A stretch of 63,959 bases of DNA, counting the filler, from Calcarisporiella thermophila CBS 279.70 (taxonomy: Eukaryota; Fungi; Calcarisporiellomycota): assembly GCF_041956535.1 (NCBI RefSeq). It is 5 parts of 5 records of this genome, joined end to end, with 100 filler letters (N's around TTAATTAATTAA, not from the genome) between each part and the next. Parts side by side here need not be neighbours in the genome. Positions count along the whole stretch, not along the records: positions 17,935 to 27,851 come from NW_027192200.1; 4 more parts are not named here. One strand, 5' to 3'. The notes beneath the pieces are model-generated. The model was not told where the DNA came from and searched no databases. It saw only the letters and a list, made by a program, of their open reading frames with translations. The position numbers and the translations under genes are program-made. Below are positions 17,935 to 27,040 of this stretch, in pieces; position 1 is the first letter of the stretch, and each line of letters begins with the position of its first letter.

Positions 17935-18278
17935 AGCTTGGAATCTCCCATATAAGTAATTTGTAGATCGAAGGAAATGCTCACGGTGAGCAGTGAAAAC
18001 CAGATTGGAAAGAAATAGATCGTCCAAAGGAGTATTCGACAAAGCCAGTTATTTGAAGGAAGAATAGCATCGTTAAAATCATATGCCATGTACATTAAAT
18101 ATGAACCTCGGTAAAAGGCGTCGGCCATGCCAATCCAAAAGCTGAGAGTGAAAGTAATGTTATTCGAAACGCTTGGGCGTACGATTCGTAGCCATATTAC
18201 GATACTCATCATGCAAAGTGCAAAGAAGATAGAGGCACAGTTAAGTGCAACTTCTGCATCAGACATCGCGAAAATCAT
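17935..18278 (-). CDS. 7-TM GPCR-like protein, paralogue 1 (truncated by the gap)
   Basis: N-terminus MIFAMSDAEVALNCASIFF...SNNITFTLSFWIG is closely similar to 21543 and 23245. Confidence 0.75.
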
Positions 18279-19023: not shown

Positions 19024-21543
19024 CTATTCAATTCGGTTATGTTCGTATGTTGTCGTTGCGTTTTTCTGTGACTTCTTCCCATGCGTGCACACAAGATTGA
19101 TACAGATTTCACTCACTCCGATCTCTTGCTCAACTCCACGCACGATCTCGTCGTACTCTTCGTTACTGATGTACATCACTTGAATCAGATATGGTCTCAG
19201 AGAATCCAGTAGTCGCATAAACCACTCTCGACCTGGTACGGTAATATATCTTGCAGAATAATCTATCGGAAATGGAATTGATATGCACTTGATATCTTCG
19301 AGGCCAATTTTGTTGAAATGAGTGGATAACCCATTAATCCAAGATGGATTAATTTCTCGCGCATGGAGAGTATTAAGCACTGTGATTGGAATAAGATCAA
19401 TATTTTTTTTTCCACTGTGATCAACAAATGCAATAAGCCTTTTTATACTAACACCCATCTGCAAGTTTTCTGAACGCTCGCCCAGATCCTTGAAGGTTGT
19501 AGTCTTTGATCATTTAAAATAAAAATGGACGTTAGCTTTCATTAGCACTCTAAATTATTTGACATGCAATTGGTTTACAGTACCCAACTCCACCACCTCT
19601 AAATATCCCCCCGGCTGAAGTACTCTCACTATCTCCCCAATGACTCTGGGCCACTCGCTCTGATACACACCAAGCCCAACACACCTAACGAACACAAAGT
19701 CAAAGCTCTCGTCTGCAAATGGGAGCGGCGCAAGGAAGTTGCCATCTTGAAAGTGGCAGTTCTCGGGTTTGATATGTTCGGGGAACCCCCTGTTGATGTC
19801 AATACCATAGAAGTGACTGCTTGGGAATTCTGCAGCCATCTCCATGGTCCAGGTGCCTGGTCCACATCTAGAACACATGAAAAGGATGTAGATGTTAATC
19901 ACCCGTGGAATGTGACAATAGTGTTCGACGTGGCTTACCCAACATCCAGCACCTTTACACCATTTAGCAATACACTTCGAACTGGTGACATGAAGTTGTG
20001 ATTGTTGAACAACGACCTAGTGAGTGTGTGGTTATACCAGTCGATCAAAATAAAGTATATCTCATTTGAAGAAGAAAATCCAACTTACCGAAACATATAG
20101 TGCTGCATAACCAATCGATCCGTCTCCTCTTCATCATTCGGCAGTATATAGTGTGCTCCTGCATCAACAAGGGGTTAGTTTATGGCTAAAAGTCAATCCA
20201 ATTAGGGCGAATAATCACCTTTGGCCCCACAGAACCTCCTCCCAAGCATCCATACATCTCCATTGCTGTCCAACTGTGGATCAGCCATATCCTCTTCTTC
20301 AAACACGCACGCATATTGTTTAGGAAATTCTTTTAGGAGCTTCATCCGTTCAAGCGGAATCGCTTCCAATGGTCTTCTTGATGACCCAGCGATATCGAGT
20401 GTTGCTTCATTGATACAGAAAGCAAAGCGAACTTTTTGACAGGGAAAAATTGCGTCTTCTTCATGTGGCTGTATCAGCTTGTCTGCAGACTTCTTCCACA
20501 TCCACAGAACTGAGCGAGACTGAGTCTCAGCTTGGTCATGAACTGTGGATGCATGAGAGATGCTTCGAGATATTGACTGAAAAGACGTCCATTTTTTGAA
20601 GATGGCCCAATTTACGAGAATTTCAGAGAAAATTGGATTGAATAGAAAGACAACAAAGCCGAGAATACCTAGCATTCCTGATGTAACGTTTTGTGCCATT
20701 GCCGTAGCATCACCGAAAGGAGTAAAACGTGTATGCGTAATAAACAAAAGTCCAAGTATACAAGTAGCTGGCATACAGACAATGAGGACTAGCGGGTACC
20801 CAAGATTTCGTAATACTGAAAGTAATATCCTAATTTCTTTATCACGAGCTTTTGATTCTTTAACCCTTCCTTTTTTCATCTTTTGAATGGTCCTGAAAAC
20901 TCGGCACAAGGAAATTATTACAATGATCAAAGAGTACAAGATGCTAGCGAGAATTATGATGCTACGCACTATTCCGAGAGCAAGTTCGGTTTCATAAGGC
21001 CAGTCATTGCTGATATATTTCTAAGAATGGTTAGTATGCAAGTATAAAAAATTAGTATCACATATTATAATGGAACAGATATTTCGCAAGTACATAATTA
21101 GTATTCCACCATGCTTTTCTATAAAATAGCTGCGGAGTCGTTGCAACAAAAGCTACCAGCGTTGATAGAGGGAGGTACCAGTTCTGATACTGTTTTATGG
21201 CAAGCTTTCCATGTATAAACGACAATTGTAGATCCAGAGTGATGCTCACGGTAAGTAGGGAAAACCAGATTGGGAAAAAAAAGAAGGACCAGAAGAGAAT
21301 TCGGCACAACCAGTTGTTGGAAGGCAAAACTGCATCATTAAAATCGTGCGCCATGAATAATAAATAAAACGCTCGGTAAAGTGCATCAGCTAAGCCAATC
21401 CAGAAACTGAGAGTAAATGAAATGTTGTTAGAAACTTTAGGGCGAACGATACGTAGCCAAATGACCATTGCCATCATAGCTAATGCAAAAAATATTGAAA
21501 CACAATTTAGCGCAACTTCCGCATTTGACATTCCGAAAATCAT
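19024..21543 (-). CDS. 7-TM GPCR-like receptor (cAMP-receptor/Git3-like) fused to a class I SAM-dependent LaeA-like methyltransferase
   Basis: Exon 1 (TM1-4) splices in frame to ORF 20202-20969 (TM5-7, GILGFVVFLFNP, then an open linker to WMLGRRFCGAK); intron 20218-20159 (GT..ctaac..CAG) joins in frame to GAHYILPNDEEETDRLVMQHY, then VLDVG|CGPGTW, GIDI, LPFADESFDFVFVR, RVLQPGGYLE. Confidence 0.7.
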
Positions 21544-22157: not shown

Positions 22158-23245
22158 CTACTCAGAAGGTTGCGCTTGGCTGTCCACACGAGCGTTTGTG
22201 CCTAGACCAATAGATGAAGGAGATTGGAGAGTACTTGAGGGTTGATTTTCTTCTGGTTTTTTTACGAGAATACTAGTGTATTGGACCGTTCTTCTTTGGA
22301 ACAGCCATATATCCTTAAAGAAGGGTACGTTTGAGAGGGATTGTGTTAATGATGGATTAAACAAAAACACGATAAAATTGAGAATTCCTTGCATTCCCGC
22401 TGTAATGTTTTGTGCAACTAATGTAGCATCGCCAACGGGAGTAAATCGAGAATGCGTGGCATAAAGGAGAGCTAGGATACTTGTTGCTGGTAAACAGATA
22501 ATGAGAACTAAAGGGTATCCAAGTACTCGAATTACAGATACGATAACCTGGAGTTCTATCTTTCGGTTTTCAAACTTTTTGACTCGGTCCTTCTCCATCT
22601 TTCGAATAGTCTCGAAAACTTTGTGCAGCGAAATGATGATAATGATGATGGAGTATAAAATACTGGCGAGAATAATACTACTCTGTACAATGTTTAGTGC
22701 AAGCTCCGTTTCGTATGGCCAGTCTGTGCTTATGTATTTCTAATACATAAAAATGTAATTAATATCTTTTGATAATCATAGACAAATGTACATACATATT
22801 CTATATTCCACCACGCCTTTCTATAGAAAAGCTGTGGTGTCGTTACAGCAAATGCCACAATGGTAGATATTGGAAGATACCATCCTTGGTATTGCCTTAT
22901 GATAAGTTTCTCATGGATGAATGAAAGTTGGAGGTCAAACGCTATGCTCACAGTGAGCAATGAAAACCAGATGGGGAAGAAAAAGAACGACCAAAGTAGA
23001 ATTCGGCATAGCCAATTATTAGAAGGAAGAACTGAATCGTTGAAATCGTGTGCCATGAATAACAAATAAAATGCCCTGTACAGCGCATCAGCTAAACCGA
23101 TCCAAAAACTAAGAGTGAAAGAAATATTGTTGGAAACTTTTGGGCGCATGATACGTAGCCATACTACTATCCCCATCATCATGACAGCAAATACGATAGA
23201 AACAAGATTAAGCGCAACTTCTGCGCCTGACATTCCAAATATCAT
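22158..23245 (-). CDS. 7-TM GPCR-like protein, paralogue 3 (no fusion), 2 exons
   Basis: Same intron position as paralogue 2 (EY|KYIS); seven hydrophobic segments; ends QGILNFIVFLFNP plus a short tail and stop. Confidence 0.8.
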
Positions 23246-24689: not shown

Positions 24690-27040
24690 GTGGATCGTCC
24701 AGCCATCATGAGAAAAATGATAGGGATTTTATCAGATAAAAATCACACAGGTGGTTGCGGAATATTGGCATTAGCGGGACTCGGCGGGATGGGTAAAACT
24801 CAACTGATGCTTCGCTATTGCTATCTCTGTCACGAAGCAAATGAATTTGTTTTTTGGCTCAACGTTAATAGCTGGACAACTACTCTCGATTCCTTTCGAA
24901 AACTTGCAAGTTATTTAGGGATCGGCGAAAACCTGCTTAATAATGAGTCAGAGGAAAATGTTATGTGCTGGGTGCGGTGTTGGCTGGAAGCAAGGGAAGG
25001 ATGGCTACTTCTTTTGGATGACTTAGACGATAGTATTAGCACAAAGATATTTAAAATATTGTCTCGCAAAGGAGGACATATAATCCTGACTACACGTGGA
25101 CCAATCTCAACTAAACTGGCTATAATTATTCAAGTGGACCGAATGTTGGAAGAGGAAGCCATCTCGTTGCTGTTAGAAAATGAGGTGTCCATCGATCGAC
25201 ATAGTGCTCGCTATTATAACGCTCGCAGGATTGTTGCTGAACTTGATTACATGCCACTTGCGATTGATCTTGCGCGTGCATACATAACAAATTCTACTTA
25301 TCCTTTTCAAGACTATCTCAGACAACTAAAAAAGAACCGACCATTGTTGTTTTCGTATCGCGATGAAAGATCAGTTGATGACTATAAGCACACGGTAGCA
25401 ACAGTTTGGGAATTAACCTTTGATCGCTTAAGGAAATTAAACCCGGCGACAGGAGTCATCCTCGAAGCTTGCGCCTTTCTTCATTCTGAAGGAATCCCAA
25501 CACGTTTTTTTGAGCGTCTGTTTTCAATTTTTGAACTTGGTTCAGAATCACTTGAACAGGATAAATTTCGATCAGCGATAGGTGATCTTAGCAAATTTTC
25601 ATTTATATCAGTGACAGTTAAAGAAGCTGATGAGAACGAGATTGAATTAATGAGCAACAGCACATTAAGCATTCGTCGACTTGTCCAAAGGATTATATTT
25701 GATTCTATCCCATATAAGAAGAAGTTATCCTGGATTCAGAAAATGGCGGTTGCACTGAATCGCGAAACACAATTTCCCGAATTCTTCGATATTTCGGCTT
25801 GGTCGGCCATGAGAGTTTATCTTCCGCGCATAAATCATTTAGTCGCAGTTGTTCTCGAACTCAATAGCGAAGAAGCATATTTCGCATGCGAGGATTTAAT
25901 CGCTTTGCTAAATACCACGACCTCATACATGCATGAAAATGGGACATTGCAGGATACAGAAAAGCTTGCACAACTTGCACTGACAATGAGTGAGATCGTT
26001 TATGGACTTGATCACATAACCACTTCACAATCTCTCCACGCTATGGCTACATTGTACTATGCTCAGGCCAAGTATGAATTGGCTGAGCCGCTCTACCAGC
26101 GTACTCTAAAACTCAGGGAGACAATATTGGGGCCTGAACACCCAGAAACTGCAGACTCCCTCAGCGGCTTATCCAATCTCTACCGGCTTCAGCTCAGGTA
26201 TGATCAAGCTGAGCCACTGTATCTACGCGCATTGACGATCAGAGAAAAGGCGTTGGGCTCTGAACACCCATACACTGCAACCCTGCTCAACGATTTCGCT
26301 GGCCTTTTTCATGATCAAGGCAAATATGAGCAGGCTGAGCCACGCTATTTGCGTGCTCTTGCGATAAGAGAGAGAAAATTAGGGGAAGATCACCCGGATA
26401 CTGCCACCTCGCTCAACGACTTAGCTAATCTCTACCAACATCAGTGTAAATATGATCAAGCTGGACCACTCTACCAACGAGCACTGGTCGTCAGAGAAAG
26501 AGTTTTAGGGGAGAACCATCGAGATACTGGGATGACACTCAACAACTTGGCGGATTTCTATCGGAATCAGGGCGAGTATAAGCTAGCCGAGACACTCTAC
26601 CTACGTGCTCTAGAAACCAGGAAAGAGTGCTGGGACCTGAACATCTGGATATTGCAGCCTCCCTCAATAATCTGGCCACTCTCTATCACGACCAAGGCAA
26701 GTACGAGCAAGCTGAACCTCTATACAAGCGTGCACTAGTGATCATCGAGAAAGAGTTGGGGGCTGTACATCCTTATACTGCTACGTCACTCAACAATCTA
26801 GCTACATTTCACTTTGACCAAGGCAAATATGAATCAGCTGAGGCTCTCTATCAACGAGTACTGGCGATCCAGGAAAAGTTGTTAGGCGCGTACCATCCTG
26901 ATACTGCAAGCTCCATTATAAAGCTGGCTGTGCTCTATGACCATCTGGGTAAATCTTATCGGGCCGAACCTCTATACCAGCGTGCTAATGCAATCAAGGA
27001 GAAGCAATTGAAAGCCACTGCCCACTTTGAATCATTCTGA
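24690..27040 (+). CDS. NLR-like NB-ARC + TPR-repeat protein with a frameshift near 26620; true start may lie upstream
   Basis: GLGGMGKTQL, WLLLLDDL, ILTTR, MPLAI motifs; tandem LGxEHPxTAxSLNNLAxLY repeats; the repeats continue in another frame (26627-27040). Confidence 0.85.

Follow-up and report, generated by a model that had tools for sequence, protein, structure and literature searches.

The 63,959-nucleotide stretch of DNA from the fungus Calcarisporiella thermophila that was analysed here (the window, filler letters included) carries, on the minus strand at positions 19024-21543, a gene (gene A) which very probably encodes a real single-polypeptide fusion of a seven-transmembrane (7TM) receptor-like domain and a cytosolic S-adenosylmethionine (SAM) methyltransferase. 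An earlier reading of the bare DNA (the sequence-only reading) had proposed such a protein, and this proposal is supported by a public gene model of 674 amino acids, by the G-protein-coupled receptor (GPCR) fold predicted for a paralogue, by Pfam methyltransferase hits and by a conserved junction between the two halves. In gene A the 7TM and catalytic domains fall within one predicted polypeptide, and there, as in five paralogues, one reading frame and one exon extend across the junction. The genome is that of strain CBS 279.70, from a study of thermophilic fungi (PMC11393059), and the species is classed in its own phylum, Calcarisporiellomycota. Positions given without a contig handle count along the window.

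The proline of the FLFNP motif of the seventh transmembrane helix (TM7) lies at 20636-20634, from where the frame remains open for 135 codons up to ...WMLGRRFCGAK. A run of about this length between the two motifs had been noted before and was reproduced by three-frame translation. The other two frames of the same stretch contain four and eight stops, and only 2 in 20,000 shuffles were stop-free, the tail itself being shuffled or random sequence of the composition of the piece being used. The canonical 60-nt intron at 20218-20159, which had been described as joining the halves in phase, does so in phase 1, and its position is common to five paralogues. The predicted motif VLDVGCGPGTW is present downstream, split into VLDVG and CGPGTW by an intron at 19938-19868. 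Reading through the 60-nt intron likewise reproduced the in-frame TAA at 20204-20202 that its retention had been expected to yield. The gene is laid out as follows.

19024-21543, minus strand: gene A, whole coding region; seven exons, ~696 amino acids from the ATG at 21543; maps to L001 (MU987573.1)
21094-21543, minus strand: exon 1, 150 codons; short outside N-terminus and TM1-TM4, as placed by hydropathy and by the helices of the model of the neighbouring paralogue copy B
21021-21093, minus strand: intron 1, 73 nt, phase 0, GTACTT...CTAAC...TAG; inside extracellular loop 2
20219-21020, minus strand: exon 2; encodes without interruption TM5-TM7, the linker or tail in the cytosol and the start of the N-terminal motif of the methyltransferase (W.LGRRF)
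20253-20624, minus strand: linker from the end of TM7 to the methyltransferase motif, ~124 codons; opens with Ser/Thr-rich SISRSISHAST
20159-20218, minus strand: intron 2, 60 nt, phase 1, GT...CTAAC...CAG; joins to (G)AHYILPNDEEETDRL...QHYMFR
20089-20158, minus strand: exon 3; motif HYILPNDEEETDRLVMQHYMFR
19939-20016, minus strand: exon 4; terminates in VLDVG, the first half of SAM-binding motif I
19868-19938, minus strand: intron between exons 4 and 5, splitting VLDVG from CGPGTW
19584-19867, minus strand: exon 5; Rossmann core of the methyltransferase, from CGPGTW to GGYLEVVE
19453-19503, minus strand: exon 6, 17 codons, DYNLQGSGRAFRKLADG; the same exon occurs in all paralogues
19024-19379, minus strand: exon 7; encodes the C-terminal half of the methyltransferase, on the substrate side, and ends in the stop TAG (19026-19024)

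All six introns of gene A have GT...AG ends and lengths of 60-80 nt, and the position of intron 1 is also found in copy B and in the fusion paralogue P0002. When read from the ATG at 21477, the exon model gives 674 amino acids and is equal, residue for residue, to the GenBank product P0023 (VTP21DRAFT_1079), which is annotated as one gene (21477-19024) under the name "uncharacterized protein". The contig MU987573.1 (GCA_041956535.1) carries both this gene and the neighbour P0001. By comparison with its relatives, the public model starts 22 codons late, at the internal ATG 21477, and cuts away half of TM1. The ATG at 21543, from which the sequence-only reading had begun the gene, is taken as the start because the 22 upstream codons are conserved with copies B and C and with other fusions, while similarity ends just upstream of it; TM1 and the conserved N-terminus begin there. 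Exons were searched singly, and work on the whole protein used the public product P0023 (674 amino acids, from ATG 21477). An Rfam search of the gene A piece found nothing.

The junction is preserved in relatives that have diverged widely. TM7, the linker and GRRF lie in one unbroken exon in P0002, P0010, P0011 and the P0013 locus, which are 30-36% identical to exon 2, as well as in the closer P0003 locus (70%), and in P0011 one exon of 414 codons encodes the entire receptor and linker. The five intron positions of the methyltransferase are identical in all five of these paralogues. An open frame kept across the junction in such diverged copies requires selection on the joined protein. The ratio of nonsynonymous to synonymous substitution rates (dN/dS), calculated between gene A and its closest paralogue (the P0003 locus), for which dS is high and the values are rough, is 0.12 for TM1-4, 0.16 for TM6-7, 0.26 for the 135 codons of the linker, 0.06 for the methyltransferase core and 0.13 for its C-terminal part. 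These values point to purifying selection on receptor, linker and methyltransferase alike; for the linker, such a comparison had been put forward as a check on the fusion, and it came out in its favour. In the alignment, the linker holds small islands conserved among the closer paralogues, one of them the Ser/Thr cluster S.S.S.AST directly after the receptor, which resembles the phosphorylation clusters of GPCR tails. The cytosolic tail of ~125 residues is probably flexible.

In the methyltransferase tree, seven sampled fusions and the stand-alone enzyme P0025 form one clade (support 98/99), apart from the enzymes of Bifiguratus, Umbelopsis and Mucorales and from another C. thermophila enzyme. 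The 7TM tree comprises three main clades, each with a fusion, the order of the fusions agrees with that in the methyltransferase tree, and at least four changes between the fused and receptor-only states are needed. The genome holds about 30 7TM genes, of which the fused loci number about seven. The simplest reading would be one ancient fusion followed by duplication and then by repeated loss of the 3' half, with copy B as one such loss. Independent repeated fusions were considered and rejected on the grounds of the single-exon junction, the identical introns and the agreement between the trees.

A search with exon 2 against 1.84 billion representative proteins returned only 21 proteins, and all 20 whose source was looked up are from C. 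thermophila. A profile of the 7TM domain matched 16 of 5.8 billion proteins, again all from C. thermophila, and no relative was found when the JGI metagenomes were searched with this profile. For the same architecture, which it had been suggested to seek in related genomes, these protein and metagenome searches brought several diverged copies in C. thermophila and none in other species. This appears to be the only genome of the phylum in the searched data, so that a species-specific family is indistinguishable from a phylum-specific one. The only long relative of the gene A enzyme outside C. thermophila is P0024 (BZG36_03077 of Bifiguratus adelaidae, 665 amino acids), which was considered as a fusion elsewhere and rejected as a methyltransferase-methyltransferase tandem. 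Each methyltransferase copy of P0024 is preceded by a ...NRRFHNEEDSAY.LPNDE... motif.

Hydropathy reveals seven hydrophobic helices in the receptor half of gene A. The three inner loops together have 16 lysines and arginines and the outer side has 4, a distribution which follows the positive-inside rule and would place the N-terminus outside and the tail and enzyme in the cytosol. The receptor structure was modelled with AlphaFold on copy B, whose 7TM part has 75% identity to that of gene A, using 16 paralogue rows. The model (predicted local distance difference test, pLDDT, 80; predicted template-modelling score, pTM, 0.76) has loop 2 folded into a beta-hairpin and a short helix following TM7. 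Compared with the PDB by Foldseek, the best 50 of its 436 matches (E<=0.001) are all class A GPCRs, with probability 1.0 and template-modelling scores of 0.48-0.63. Its structural neighbours in the ESM Atlas are also class A GPCRs (0.73-0.79), and those nearest by sequence features are Dicty_CAR-like (cAMP-receptor-like) clusters. Near-invariant in the 7TM family alignment are the TM2 sequence SFWIGLAD, a D-L that closes TM3, the TM6 sequence YP.VLI..P and the NP of TM7. A GPCR fold for the receptor half is supported by the modelling. Class A and cAMP-receptor-like GPCRs share with this half a matching fold, the TM6 proline and the TM7 NP motif; they differ from it in that no significant family match links them, a DRY motif is missing and identity in structural alignments is 11-17%. 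Among the curated GPCR families (7tm_1, Dicty_CAR, Git3 and others), a significant match was not found, and the Pfam field is '-' for all receptor-only members. The transmembrane and Pfam check that the sequence-only reading had called for thus returned the seven helices and Methyltransf_25/23 as anticipated, while no GPCR family, Git3 and Dicty_CAR included, reached its cut-off.

The core of the enzyme half is of the SAM-binding, Rossmann type known from class I methyltransferases and contains motif I (G.G.G) as well as the acidic post-I residue. Exon 5 alone matches Methyltransf_25 in Pfam at 5e-15, above the cut-off, the paralogues match Methyltransf_23 at ~1e-13, and the domain model (pLDDT 90) has a class I fold. 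A Pfam CheR hit on this half was not significant. Invariant across the fusion clade are CGPGTW, GID, FD..R and P.GY.E, as well as VLDVGCGPGTW and GIDI. Upstream of motif I, the N-terminal motif GR.(F/Y)...Y.LPND..E..RL..H is invariant in all fusions and in P0025 and is also found in Bifiguratus and Umbelopsis relatives, and Y.LPND..E..RL...H..FR is invariant within the fusion clade. The motif GRRF...Y.LPND..E..RL is presumably a mark of LaeA-type enzymes. The label 'LaeA-like' that had been given to this half applies broadly, to fungal enzymes of the Methyltransf_23 type that carry the GRRF...Y.LPND..E..RL motif, and goes no further, as the nearest named relatives are generic. These are stand-alone methyltransferases of Mucoromycota and Dikarya ('putative methyltransferase C1B3.06c', 'S-adenosyl-L-methionine-dependent methyltransferase'), which share with gene A the domain, the Y.LPND..E..RL motif and the Methyltransf_23/25/11 hits and are 30-37% identical to it in the aligned domain, but which are without a membrane domain.

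Structural neighbours of the methyltransferase are small-molecule enzymes, namely Methanosarcina mazei 3mgg, LahSB, OxaG, RoqN, TmtA/GtmA and phosphoethanolamine methyltransferases, and the best solved sequence relatives by profile are the plant phosphoethanolamine methyltransferases (AtPMT2 core, 2.5e-23). A phosphoethanolamine N-methyltransferase was nonetheless rejected as the identity of the enzyme, the R-D-A-I-L-H of these proteins being aligned with R-C-V-G-L-G in gene A. The titles of mutant structure entries of PfPMT name D128 and H132, which we take to be its catalytic Asp/His pair, located after motif II. These Asp and His positions face Cys and Gly in gene A, for which reason the enzyme is not considered a phosphoethanolamine methyltransferase. 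That the methyltransferase is active is likely.

The gene A product may act as a 'GPCR-bigram', the term used for 7TM proteins with a catalytic C-terminus, its 7TM domain holding an active methyltransferase at the membrane. The state of the receptor would then govern the activity of the enzyme, its access to substrate or its release, and the output would be the methylation of a nearby cytosolic or membrane-proximal target, instead of or besides the activation of a G protein. Bacterial chemoreceptors, which tether CheR by a flexible tail, offer a further analogy. The parts of this proposal differ in strength. That the fusion is under selection and that its 7TM part positions or regulates an active enzyme is slightly favoured over its alternatives taken together, while control of methylation by the receptor is a tentative suggestion that falls short of even likelihood. 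Its fullest form is more doubtful still: an extracellular cue acting on the 7TM domain would switch the enzyme on or off or free it, its targets would be a signalling protein, its own tail or a membrane-proximal metabolite, and methylation would serve as a second message independent of G proteins, the whole having been invented once in Calcarisporiellomycota and spread over ~7 receptors with different ligand pockets. A complex prediction between the receptor and methyltransferase domains of P0002 scored 0.13 (mark 0.34), which counts neither for nor against docking.

Several observations weigh against a receptor that signals through methylation. All of the evidence derives from one genome assembly of one strain, and the single transcript of gene A is inferred from comparison within that genome. 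Pfam places the 7TM half in no family above the cut-off, the best being 7tm_1 (E=0.13), and no DRY-type motif was found in it. Small molecules, and not proteins, are the substrates of the nearest solved relatives of the methyltransferase. In the P0003 locus, the 7TM half is broken while the open reading frame (ORF) of the linker and methyltransferase is intact, so that the enzyme half may work alone.

The main alternative is that the 7TM domain is a membrane anchor, or binds and presents a lipophilic substrate, and that the substrate of the enzyme is a small molecule or the head group of a lipid, with no signal being transduced. The small-molecule enzymes among the solved neighbours (3mgg, OxaG, RoqN, TmtA/GtmA, LahSB and the phosphoethanolamine N-methyltransferases) speak for this, as does the failure of the 7TM half to match a curated GPCR family. 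The nearest stand-alone paralogue, P0025, moreover begins with MGNVKS followed by basic residues, a myristoylation-like start which suggests that the fusion clade works at membranes anyway. The predicted fold is, however, specifically GPCR-like, with a loop-2 hairpin, a TM6 proline, a TM7 NP motif and a post-TM7 helix, unlike a generic anchor. Seven helices held at a dN/dS of 0.12-0.16 and kept in ~30 copies also exceed what tethering needs, and the catalytic Asp/His positions of the phosphoethanolamine methyltransferases are not kept. An anchored metabolic enzyme is accordingly judged unlikely, although it is the most serious competitor to a placed or regulated one.

Less probable again, and on balance improbable, is that the locus yields two products, with a receptor transcript that ends early or keeps intron 2 (stop at 20204-20202), a methyltransferase translated from an internal ATG, such as that of ...EEEDMADPQL... 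near 20290, and a fusion that is rare or absent. The linker does contain in-frame ATGs, a retained intron 2 leads to an immediate stop, and the P0003 locus keeps a methyltransferase-only ORF behind its broken 7TM half that is annotated as a gene of its own. Against this, the halves are never separated by a stop in five intact or near-intact paralogues, and their junction never coincides with an exon border. The linker is under purifying selection in the fusion frame, the domain trees are congruent, and the public pipeline called a single gene at gene A and at three other loci. A decaying or mispredicted gene, whether an annotation artefact or a young functionless pseudogene, is very improbable: several family members are fragmentary or broken (the P0003 locus, P0060, P0005 and P0006) and the family was found in one species only, but the frame of ~696 codons is intact, the splice sites are all canonical, the SAM motifs are all kept and every part has a dN/dS far below 1.

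Gene A is related to the following loci in the genome.

P0002, 704 amino acids: full-length receptor-methyltransferase, 36% identical to exon 2, on its own scaffold
P0010, 743 amino acids: full-length fusion, 34% identical to exon 2, on its own scaffold
P0011, 764 amino acids: full-length fusion, 30% identical to exon 2, on its own scaffold
P0013, L006:3213-5676, 454 amino acids: truncated annotation, the missing 7TM exons lying upstream in frame
P0022, 528 amino acids: model that begins in extracellular loop 2, without TM1-TM4
P0003 (locus 1088), L002:5004-7498, 357 amino acids: on the same contig as gene A, ~25 kb away; the closest copy, 70% identical to gene A
P0060 (VTP21DRAFT_6132), 337 amino acids: odd model in which TM1-3 are joined directly to the methyltransferase
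22158-23245, minus strand: copy B (P0001, VTP21DRAFT_1080), receptor-only tandem paralogue of 343 amino acids in two exons, with an intron at 22795-22740
17935-18278 (L001:14968-15311), minus strand: copy C, first ~114 codons of a third 7TM paralogue, unannotated, running into an assembly gap
P0025 (VTP21DRAFT_11468), L007:4001-5728: stand-alone methyltransferase inside the fusion clade, with no 7TM gene upstream

In the P0003 locus, the frame is shifted between TM5 and TM6 by a tandem duplication of 32 bp whose copies have diverged (~L002:5722-5785); the linker and methyltransferase ORF is intact and annotated on its own, and the model leaves out the VLDVG exon as well. Beside P0013, the opposite strand carries 7TM-coding sequence (L006:1367-261) that may belong to P0022, in which case the two genes would stand head to head. 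Copy B is 85% identical to gene A over exon 1. It had been described as a neighbour with the same layout and a short tail, and it does share the first intron and end 61 residues past FLFNP. The gap beside copy C is a 3.2-kb run of N (L001:15312-18532), and copy C is most similar to the 7TM half of the P0003 locus. A receptor-only gene adjoins each of the two closest fusion loci, 1079 being paired with 1080 (22158-23245) and 1088 with 1089 (L002:8514-9605). The similar short tails (FFKDIWLFQ...) of 1080 and 1089 suggest that fusion and receptor were duplicated as a block. The C-terminal tail ...P.ER..L..R.KEL... of P0025 also occurs in the fusions P0010 and P0011, and the methyltransferase P0041 lies directly upstream of P0025. 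Near gene A, on the plus strand at 24708-27040, is an NLR-like gene in which an NB-ARC NTPase precedes many TPR_10/TPR_12 repeats, annotated as one product of 764 amino acids. Its raw ORFs are split at ~26627-26738, which indicates an intron or a frame change.

Receptor-enzyme fusions reveal the biochemical outputs that are wired directly to sensing. In the literature consulted, the partners described for 7TM domains are lipid kinases and phosphatases, cyclases, phosphodiesterases and protein kinases, to which the methyltransferase of gene A would, if the reading is correct, add methylation. The family also illustrates how a fusion gene may seed a whole receptor family in one lineage. The sequence itself is not new, as the fused model was already deposited in GenBank as an uncharacterized protein, while the recognition of the receptor-methyltransferase architecture and of the family appears to be. 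Full-text literature searches found no report pairing a GPCR with a methyltransferase domain.

Among known systems, the 7TM-RGS proteins, such as AtRGS1 of plants, resemble gene A in the combination of a seven-helix receptor-like domain with a cytosolic C-terminal effector domain (PMC6033456). They differ in that RGS does not act enzymatically on any substrate besides G-alpha and in having no sequence relation to gene A. The fungal GprK-type proteins are also 7TM-RGS proteins.

The closest functional picture in fungi is provided by Aspergillus nidulans, in which VapA retains VipC and VapB, methyltransferases of the LaeA type, at the plasma membrane, and a signal is proposed to release them (PMC4299510). 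In both cases a fungal SAM methyltransferase would be held at the membrane. VapA is, however, a separate FYVE zinc-finger protein that binds non-covalently, whereas the tether in gene A is a covalent 7TM domain, so that the gene A product may be the covalent counterpart of VapA tethering VipC and VapB. If true, it would offer a naturally occurring, covalently tethered form of such LaeA-type enzymes at the membrane, for which substrates have been hard to find for twenty years; the link to a receptor could allow the enzyme to be triggered and its substrates to be caught.

In architecture, gene A is most readily set beside the GPCR-bigrams of oomycetes and amoebae, in which a 7TM domain is joined to PIPK, INPP, AC, PDE or TKL and for which the mode of action is open, the models including direct activation, cleavage and a G-protein relay (PMC6033456). 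Like those of oomycetes, amoebae and choanoflagellates (GPCR-PIPK/RpkA, -INPP, -AC, -PDE and -TKL), it has an N-terminal 7TM domain followed by a cytosolic C-terminal catalytic domain and occurs as several paralogues per genome. It differs in that its 7TM family is unrelated by sequence and found in one species only, its partner is a SAM methyltransferase and its host is a fungus. The partner, Methyltransf_25/23, is none of those described for bigrams (PIPK, INPP, AC, PDE, TKL and aspartic protease), and the word 'methyltransferase' is absent from PMC6033456, PMC5784254 and PMC12716839, one of which reports that GPCR-PIPKs are absent from fungi. The remark in the sequence-only reading that no GPCR-methyltransferase fusion was known is in line with this literature, which names no such partner. 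Set against these systems, the verdict is that gene A probably encodes a receptor-like protein with a catalytic accessory domain, in which both the partner and, for such catalytic fusions, the kingdom appear to be new.

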